Translations under genes and position numbers: made by a program
The notes under the pieces: generated by a model
Seen by the model: only the letters and a program-made list of their open reading frames with translations
Database searches by the model: none
Told to the model about the DNA's origin: nothing
Shown: positions 54,956-57,122 of the stretch, one piece after another
Layout: each line of letters starts with the position of its first letter
Position numbering within the stretch: position 1 is the first letter of the stretch
From: Cyanophora paradoxa CCMP329
Lineage: Eukaryota; Plantae; Glaucophyta
Length of the DNA stretch: 64,000 nt
NCBI GenBank assembly: GCA_004431415.1
Contig: QPMI01000482.1
Span: 1-64,000, forward strand
Direction of reading: 5' to 3'

Positions 54956-57122
54956 CTACGAGGCGGCGCTGGCGGAGCGGGAGGCCTTTTCCGCGAGGCC
55001 CGAGGTGCCCTCGCGGCGCGCCAGCTCGCCGAAGACCTGCCGCGCGCCCGGGTTCGGACCCGGGCGGGCCCCGAGAGCGAGGGGGGCGGCCGCGGGACGC
55101 ACGCGCGACGGCTCGACGCCAGCGCAGACCCACAGCACGCACAAGTGGTACATAAGATCGGCGCTCTGTACGGAAAGATCGGTACACCCCGAGATGCGGC
55201 GGACACGATGTGCCCCCGCACCTCCGAAACCAGGTCCTCCGTGATGCGGAGCGTGGCCGCCACGACCGTCTCCACGGCCTCCTCTCCCACCTGTACCCCA
55301 GTGAGCAAGGAAGGGGGAAAAGCGACGGAGGGTGCGGGCGGGCCTTCTGGGCGATGCGCTTGGCGCCCTTGGAGAGGAGGCGGGCGGTGTAGGAGCTCGC
55401 GGGGTCGGCGCCCCTCCGCTCCGCGACGAGCGCGTGCAGCGCCTCCAGCGTCTGAAGGGTGCCCGGTTCGACCGACCCGAGGAGTTCGAAGGGGGGACGG
55501 GGAGGGGAGGGGGCACGCACGACGGCGCTGGCGGAGCGGGTGGCGGCGGTGGAGCCGTCGACGTGCGCGCGGAGCTCGGCTCCCGACCCGCGCGACGCCT
55601 TCTCCGCCATCCCTTCGAAGGGCTCGGTGGGGCGGGGCGCGGGGGTCTGGGTGGTGTGGGGGTACCCGAGATGCCCTCGCGGCGCTGGAGCTCGGCCCAC
55701 ACGTTGCCGGGGCTCACCCCCGAGGCGGCCCACAGGACCAGCAGGTGGTACACCAGATCCGCGCTCTGCCGGCCCCGGAGTTCGGCACCGGGTACGCGAA
55801 TTCGATTCGGGGGTGCGGGGGCACGGGGCTCGCCTCGGAGACGACGGCGGCGGCGGCGGCGGGCTGGTCGGCGCCGGGCGCGCCGATGGCCGCCGCCTCG
55901 ATCGCGAGCTCGACCGCCTCCTCGCCGACCTGCGTACCCCCCTCCTCCGCGTGAGAGGGGGCCGCAGAGGCGCGGGCGCCGCGCGCGGGCCTTCTGGGCG
56001 ATCTTCTCGACGCCCTTGGAGAGGAGCTTGGCGGTGTAGGAGGCGGAGGGGTCCTCGCTCTTGCGGCTCTGGATCACATCCGAGAGGCGCTCCAGCACCG
56101 AGTCCCACTGCGCCGCCGGCACCGAGTCCGACGACGACGACGCCGCCGCCGCCGCCGGGGCCGCCGCCGGGGCCGCCGCCGGGGAGAGGGCGGGGAAGAG
56201 GATGACGACCGAGTGGCACCCGATGGAGCGGTTCTCCCCCAGGCTGTCCACCTTCTCGTGCGTCTTCGCCTGCGCCCCGCCCGCCCGCATCAAATTCGAG
56301 CGGCGCGAGGGCGGATCGAATTCGCGCGCCTTGACGTTGACGCGCTCGACGTCGGCGCCGATCATGTCGGCGATGTTCTGTCGGATCGCGGCCTTGTGCG
56401 GCGAGAGCTTCGGGCGCTCCAGGATGATCGTCACGTCGAGGTTGCCCACCTGCGCCCACCTCCCTTAGCGGCGGCGCAGCGCGGCGGGGGGGCTCGGGCG
56501 GGGCGGCGAGGCGGCGGCGCTTGCCTCGTAGCCGGCGGCGCGCATGCGGCGGGCGGCCTCCTCGAGGAACATGCGCGAGTCGGCGCCCTTGTAGCGCGGG
56601 TCGTTGTCAGGGAAGAGCTGCCCGATGTCCGGGAGCGAGAGGGCGCCCAGGATCGCGTCAGTCACGCAGTGCAGCACCACGTCCCCGTCGGAGTGGCCCA
56701 CGCAGCTGCGGCACCGGCCGGCAGCGTCGGCGCGCGCGCAGTCGCGAAATCTGGGACGTCGGCGCGGCGCACCCGCGGTCGTGCTCGAGCTTGACTCCAC
56801 CGACAATCAGCTTGTTGTCCGGCTCCAGACGGTGCAGGTCGAAGCCGTGGCCGATCCTCGGCATGGGCAGCGGCGCTGCCGGGGCTTGCGCCTGCGCCTC
56901 CACCCGCAGCCGGCGGAAAGCCGGCAGCTGCGACGAGCCTTCCGGTCTGCTCGCGACCCGGAAGCCGCGCCGCGGGACGAAGGAGGCGAGCGGGGCATCG
57001 GGTTTGCACAGATGAGCCACCTGGCTCTGCGCCGGCCGCAGGGCGGTGCGGCTGCTGGTCGAAGGTGGCGCAAGTGGCGCCGCGACGGTCGCAACAGCCG
57101 GGAGGACGAAGGCAGCCGCCAT
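54956..57122 (-). CDS. ispF: Plastid-targeted fusion: IspF (MECDP synthase), linker, and two tandem HisE (phosphoribosyl-ATP pyrophosphatase) domains
   Basis: Transit peptide MAAAFV..; Isp[51 protein letters not shown]|[16 protein letters not shown]; then twice SYTAxLLSKG..IAQK|VGEEAVE..SE|SADLxYHLxVL..VxxELxRREG.SG.AEKASR. Confidence 0.92.

Follow-up and report, generated by a model that had tools for sequence, protein, structure and literature searches.

A single spliced gene of Cyanophora paradoxa encodes IspF joined to two consecutive HisE domains, and the same union of IspF with HisE was found throughout the sampled red algae. We consider it probable that the product is a plastid bifunctional enzyme which performs both ordinary reactions. 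The gene was located on the minus strand of the window, i.e., the whole 64-kb stretch of DNA that was analyzed. The window was approximately 68% GC and rich in short introns, which fits the published genome of this species with its 67.6% GC, 9.2 introns per gene and a mean intron length of 86 bp (PMC6704402).

Structure of the fusion gene

The coding sequence of the manual gene model was 1539 nt long and contained one stop, which was terminal. The following features were identified.

57122-54956, minus strand: whole IspF-HisE-HisE gene, 11 exons, 512 aa (manual gene model)
57122-56773, 56705-56525, 56449-56330, 56269-55991, 55929-55834, 55765-55666, 55612-55521, 55451-55344, 55290-55222, 55165-55103 and 55036-54956, minus strand: the 11 exons (manual model)
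56862-57122, minus strand: N-terminal extension, aa 1-87, predicted plastid transit peptide; Phe at position 5, rich in Ala, Pro, Arg and Ser
56195-56861, minus strand: IspF (MEcPP synthase, PF02542), aa 88-242, exons 1-4; profile match, ligands D95, H97 and H129
56105-56194, minus strand: linker 1, Ala/Pro/Ser, aa 243-272 (30 aa), in exon 4; free of stops and of Met, GC3 1.0
55587-56104, minus strand: HisE domain 1 (PRA-PH, PF01503), aa 273-384; E314, E317, E342 and D345, with a 9-aa Ala-rich loop insertion
55521-55586, minus strand: linker 2, aa 385-406; an 18-nt word at its end is also present at the 3' end of the gene
55452-55520, minus strand: intron 7, 69 nt, GT-AG, in frame and stop-free, at the HisE1/HisE2 junction
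54956-55451, minus strand: HisE domain 2, aa 407-512 plus stop; E446, E449, E465 and D468, with two intron positions common to HisE1

The 10 introns were 53–75 nt each, five of them GT-AG and five GC-AG, and each GC donor was preceded by an exon ending in AG. Six splice junctions in IspF and HisE1 aligned colinearly with five red algal homologues with zero indels, which fixes the GC donors in that part of the gene. At one intron position the donor was GC in HisE1 and GT in HisE2. A further in-frame intron of 93 nt (57020-56928) is possible within the transit peptide region, and intron 7, being in frame and stop-free, could be retained in the transcript.

Database queries were made with single exons or with the stop-free ORF 54959-56449, and the spliced protein was profiled locally. 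Run on the exons one by one, Pfam assigned exons 1-3 to YgbB/IspF, which covered the contiguous profile stretches 2-28, 32-90 and 92-130, and exons 4, 6, 8 and 10 to PRA-PH. The local IspF match was a full-length PF02542 (aa 89-241, profile 2-154, 273 bits), and both HisE matches to PF01503 were also full length (aa 276-383, profile 1-99, 125 bits; aa 409-506, profile 2-99, 120 bits). The Zn ligands claimed for IspF in the initial annotation were all kept (D95, H97, H129); the metal ligands of this enzyme are an Asp-x-His and a second His (PMC5821942). The HSD, DIG and KxKT motifs were kept as well. The same annotation had assigned metal-binding acidic residues to each HisE domain, and both sites (ExxE and ExxD) were retained and could be mapped by motif spacing onto E214, E217, E234 and D237 of MtHISN2 (PMC8102479). 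A HisI (PRA-CH) domain had zero matches in the fusion protein model or the 64-kb window. An IspD domain N-terminal to IspF was absent: exon 1 matched YgbB alone, apart from the 87-aa N-terminus, which resembles a transit peptide.

The region had been read at the outset as one spliced gene and not as a merge of gene models, and this reading was confirmed. Exon 56269-55991 contained the end of IspF, the linker and the start of HisE1, and the interval between the two domains within it had zero stops in any frame and zero ATG. The interval between HisE1 and HisE2 also had zero stops in any frame. Random 30-codon stretches in this GC-rich DNA are open in 65% of cases, so an open linker alone is weak proof. 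Stronger proof came from GC3, which was 0.94–1.0 throughout both linkers, and from 109 other proteins that share the domain order, including one encoded by an intronless ORF. It might still be argued that two or three neighboring genes were read as one through an error in the gene model or the assembly, as half of the donors were GC and the protein database search did not recover the full-length C. paradoxa protein. We consider such an artefact extremely improbable, given that the junction within one exon left no room for a promoter or a second transit peptide, that the same architecture is intronless in Cyanidioschyzon, and that the HisE copies were too diverged for mis-assembly. The single-gene fusion is real and well supported at the DNA level.

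The N-terminal extension matched the features of cyanelle-type precursors, which carry Phe within the first 10 residues, are Ala-rich and have a V-x-A cleavage motif (PMC4510345). A single acidic residue was present in its first 60 aa. Judging by the V-x-A motif, the transit peptide is likely cut after V74-E75-A76, and the plastid transit peptide claimed earlier is upheld as a prediction from these residues. The fusion protein was not in the 262-protein cyanelle list, which was searched by name only and is uninformative on this point.

Upstream of the fusion gene by ~265 bp, and head-to-head with it, was an armadillo-repeat gene (57388-58800, plus strand), and a glycogenin-like GT8 gene (52157-53632, plus strand) converged on its 3' end; neither had a pathway link. 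Elsewhere in the window, a Tic20 plastid import component (10113-10682, minus strand) lay beside a divergent TLC-family ATP/ADP transporter (11716-14397, plus strand), and a tandem pair of similar coding blocks (25471-26330 and 28899-29724, plus strand) belonged to a gene of no assigned family. Two near-identical protease pieces, which we take to be papain/cathepsin-like, were present in inverted orientation (39563-39640, plus strand; 49718-51386, minus strand).

The red algal fusion family

An initial search yielded 16 proteins that combine PF02542 and PF01503 in a single chain, and a profile search identified 79 IspF-HisE clusters, corresponding to 109 proteins when cluster members were included. 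All named proteins among the 109 were from red algae, ranging from Cyanidiales to Florideophyceae (Cyanidioschyzon, Cyanidiococcus, four Galdieria, Porphyridium, Rhodosorus, Purpureofilum, Bangiopsis, Pyropia, Chondrus, Gracilaria, Agarophyton, Eucheuma), and every red algal lineage that was sampled from public databases had the IspF-HisE form. The initial annotation knew of no fusion between IspF and HisE. That claim fell, as the IspF-HisE architecture is already common in databases, whereas the doubled HisE is not: among the retrieved proteins, only the C. paradoxa gene had two HisE domains after IspF. Zero fusions from other glaucophytes were found among the 109. Unfused IspF occurred in plants and green algae, as well as in the named Vitrella and Diacronema and a diatom cluster.

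The catalytic motifs were strongly conserved over 110 fusions, with EExxE and ExxD present in 110/110 and HSDGD in 107/110. The red algal proteins, such as those of Cyanidioschyzon merolae (CMT435C / BAM83373.1), Porphyridium (KAA8496986.1) and Chondrus (XP_005715891.1), resembled the C. paradoxa protein in their order of transit peptide, IspF, linker and HisE and in possessing all catalytic motifs, with identities of 62–72% in IspF and 47–60% in HisE. They differed in having a single HisE, in being intronless where checked (Cyanidioschyzon, in which CMT435C is one uninterrupted ORF) and in their annotation as plain IspF. Additionally, 108 of the 109 red fusions contained Trp in the S-x-T motif where C. 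paradoxa contained Tyr. Linker length varied across the fusions from 22 to 88 aa, and the linker was low-complexity in C. paradoxa. Orthologues of the Cyanidioschyzon fusion are expressed in Cyanidiophyceae (PMC13353863 supplement).

The functional names given to IspF-HisE proteins in databases referred to IspF only. No description of the fusion was found in the open literature (subscription journals being outside coverage), and it was unmentioned in a phylogeny of the MEP pathway (PMC7912892), a survey of plastid amino acid pathways (PMC3518814) and a survey of C. merolae isoprenoids (PMC12649381). The red algal IspF-HisE family appears to be undescribed in that literature, and with the C. 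paradoxa member, in which HisE is doubled, it reaches a second lineage with primary plastids.

Duplication of HisE and the oligomer question

HisE1 and HisE2 were identical at 58 of 100 aligned residues and had two intron positions in common. Their 4-fold sites were saturated (20/37 differed, with 0.53 expected), so the 58% amino acid identity indicates purifying selection on both copies. Monophyly of the two domains was not rejected (p 0.494), and the pair is an old internal duplication. An exact 18-nt word ended both linker 2 (55540-55523) and the gene (54981-54964); this was matched in 0 of 2000 shuffles, with the windows picked post hoc. Intron 7 follows the word at about the place where the HisE1 stop would have been, which suggests that the 3' half of the gene was duplicated and that a splice donor took the place of the first stop. 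A bacterial tandem HisE-HisE (P0184, locus L001:534-1190) similarly contains two HisE domains in one chain, but it has no IspF and represents an independent duplication, its halves pairing in the tree (99/93). Its second half is partly degenerate, with part of ExxD gone. This tandem is set in a hisF-hisE-HIT operon.

IspF acts as a trimer, its sites lying between the subunits (PMC5821942), and HisE acts as an obligatory dimer (PMC8102479). It follows that red algal chains, each with a single HisE, must cross-link trimers. Campylobacter IspDF solves such a mismatch of trimer and dimer as a hexamer. Bacterial IspDF is comparable in that an IspF trimer is joined to a dimeric enzyme of a non-consecutive step (PMC5821942), but there the partner is N-terminal and from the same pathway, whereas in C. 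paradoxa it is C-terminal and from another pathway. The initial annotation proposed that the tandem HisE forms an internal pseudo-dimer, and this is plausible from a model of a bacterial proxy in place of the C. paradoxa protein. The P0184 tandem of the his operon, modeled as a single chain with a 37-row alignment, formed one confident unit (pLDDT 89, pTM 0.85). The linker between the HisE domains is longer in C. paradoxa than in this tandem. The best structural matches of the proxy were HisE/HisIE (~1 Å rmsd), with MazG a weaker match. The model of the Porphyridium fusion showed two well-folded domains that were undocked, with a disordered linker (pTM 0.50).

Origin and function of the fusion

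The best bacterial matches to algal HisE were Alphaproteobacteria, with at least 80 loci and up to 69% identity among the matches listed in a GTDB pattern scan. Plain tblastn with algal HisE gave 58% for Alphaproteobacteria vs. 35–49% for other groups, and the HisE tree split the algal and alphaproteobacterial rows from other bacteria (99/98). The monofunctional HisE of alphaproteobacterial hisF-hisE operons was the closest sequence type to C. paradoxa HisE, sharing the C-terminal tail and the full set of metal ligands, but differed in being stand-alone and ~105 aa long. Both of the two alphaproteobacterial hisE loci with gene calls adjoined hisF. No ispF was found within 4 kb of hisE at the 80 alphaproteobacterial loci among the matches listed, and no hisE near plastid-like IspF at 84 other loci, and fusion within a eukaryote is therefore most likely. 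An operon origin was rejected on present data. A search for viral hisE gave none. An alpha-type HisE at L096:1582-2310 (P0304) ended a called ORF with an intron-like front; its contig is probably eukaryotic and contained no IspF or HisI.

The IspF of C. paradoxa grouped with red and green plastid IspF (~70%) and with an unfused bacterial IspF group (73–76%). The stand-alone IspF/MDS of plants and green algae (Arabidopsis, PDB 2pmp) belongs to the same plastid clade at ~70% identity and differs from the fusion in having no C-terminal domain. The source of plastid IspF has been called unclear (PMC7912892), and the bacterial group is, from its likeness, a candidate donor lineage. It included P0098, P0099, P0104, P0105 and their kin (L097:2164-2727, L098:6001-6879, L099:7746-8291, L101:829-1353), all unfused, and P0098 had roughly 50% identity to other bacterial IspF. 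The loci looked operon-like, with a sigma54 regulator, YjeF_N, lipA and ilvC nearby, and one record was GCA_030634875.1.

In the explanation that we favor, one nuclear gene would produce a bifunctional enzyme that is imported into the plastid, where the transit peptide is cut off. The IspF domains would form the usual trimer and convert CDP-ME2P to MEcPP, the HisE domains would carry out step 2 of histidine synthesis by stripping PR-ATP of pyrophosphate, and a separate HisI would perform step 3, with the two kinds of domain working independently on a flexible linker. Historically, an alphaproteobacterial hisE would have been transferred to the nucleus, where attachment to the 3' end of an ispF that was already targeted would have made its product importable. 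This event most likely happened once, before the split of red algae and glaucophytes and probably in the archaeplastid ancestor, and green algae and plants would later have replaced the fusion HisE with HisIE. In the C. paradoxa lineage, the HisE part would have been duplicated such that its dimer closes within the chain and the IspF trimer forms without cross-linking.

HisG and HisC are present in the Cyanophora cyanelle proteome (PMC4510345), which places the histidine pathway in the plastid. The co-import of two pathway enzymes that had been suggested from the start is supported as a prediction. In Galdieria partita, the name phosphoribosyl-AMP cyclohydrolase is given to a separate gene (PMC13353863 supplement), which would fit a stand-alone HisI; this is a name-level assignment, and the same name is used for bifunctional plant HISN2. 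A HisI query against protein clusters returned bacterial clusters only. In a plasmid collection, stand-alone hisI was present on ~600 Klebsiella plasmid records, often twice. Plant HISN2, bacterial HisIE and fungal HIS4 are also fusions with a PRA-PH domain working as a dimer (PMC8102479), but their partners are histidine enzymes (HisI, HisD). Plant HISN2 is reported to be Myxococcales-like, unlike the alpha-type algal HisE (PMC8102479). The simplest account is a bifunctional enzyme whose HisE borrows the IspF transit peptide and is not easily lost or split off.

The same function could have been reached by another history, in which the glaucophyte and red fusions arose independently through separate transfers of alphaproteobacterial hisE. 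Red algae and C. paradoxa did not form a single clade in free trees, and the C. paradoxa HisE copies were equally near bacteria (0.56–0.59) and red algae (0.55–0.57). The Tyr in place of Trp likewise sets C. paradoxa apart from the red fusions. AU tests did not reject a single origin, though (HisE p 0.164; IspF p 0.224), and the 100 columns of the HisE tree failed to hold even Pyropia with other red algae. In a larger tree, a starred set united HisE2 with 28 red rows (97/83), a placement not seen in a smaller tree. Independent origins require that donor class, partner, domain order and linker position coincided in two separate events, and we regard them as decidedly unlikely; a single origin is more parsimonious, given that the two fusions agree in donor class, partner and domain order.

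Two readings assign the fusion a different role. The initial annotation considered that the HisE domains were repurposed to hydrolyze nucleotide-linked intermediates or by-products of the MEP pathway. In this reading they would be a MazG-like house-cleaning pyrophosphatase acting on cytidine nucleotides or CDP-ME by-products, with another enzyme performing histidine step 2. HisE does belong to the all-alpha NTP pyrophosphatase fold, with MazG a weak structural match of the proxy; the partner IspF handles cytidine nucleotides, and a second source of HisE is possible. This reading is not favored and seems quite improbable, as each domain retained 32/33 columns conserved in his-type HisE, those columns had no lineage-specific change bar one hydrophobic swap, identity to alphaproteobacterial HisE was 55–59% (as near as red algae are), and the proxy matched HisE/HisIE above MazG. 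Membership in MazG itself was rejected, with Pfam giving PRA-PH only and the PDB sequence matches being all HisE/HisIE. Alternatively, the fusion may be kept for pathway coupling, through an MEP metabolite (MEcPP, CMP or prenyl diphosphates in the IspF cavity) or PR-ATP/PR-AMP acting across domains, or as a regulated trimer-plus-dimer particle that balances isoprenoid and histidine flux. It was retained in all red algal groups sampled, including the reduced genomes of Cyanidiales, and in C. paradoxa; part of the florideophyte linkers forms a conserved helix-like motif (consensus), and IspF trimers bind prenyl diphosphates, for which a feedback role has been proposed (PMC5821942). Against this, the linkers varied as described and IspF and HisE were undocked in the red algal model, green lineages and the named secondary-plastid groups have unfused IspF, and the pathways have no common substrate, with channelling not found even for IspD/E/F (PMC5821942). 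Retention is already explained by a HisE with no transit peptide of its own, and we hold coupling to be unlikely.

The fusion joins two known enzymes, its chemistry is likely ordinary, and its architecture is not unique to C. paradoxa. As a discrete character, the fusion may inform archaeplastid evolution, for which both red-first and glaucophyte-first branching have been argued (PMC6704402). If red algae or glaucophytes branch first, the fusion was present in the common ancestor and lost by greens; as a shared innovation, it would support a grouping of red algae and glaucophytes. A bolder version, which we hold to be doubtful, is that a single ancient event either marks the two as sisters or built a regulated isoprenoid-histidine assembly in the plastid, in which HisE dimers tie IspF trimers together in red algae and internal duplication has resolved this cross-linking in the glaucophyte. 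The mismatch of trimer and dimer, with its one-copy and two-copy solutions, is directly testable in Cyanidioschyzon through the single-exon CMT435C. The gene is also a clear candidate for a foreign gene that gained plastid import via the transit peptide of another protein, in a fusion of unrelated pathways retained over a whole algal phylum. For both red algae and glaucophytes, the fusion is the likely enzyme for histidine step 2, concealed so far by its annotation as IspF. Engineering or inhibiting red algal IspF would touch histidine supply too.
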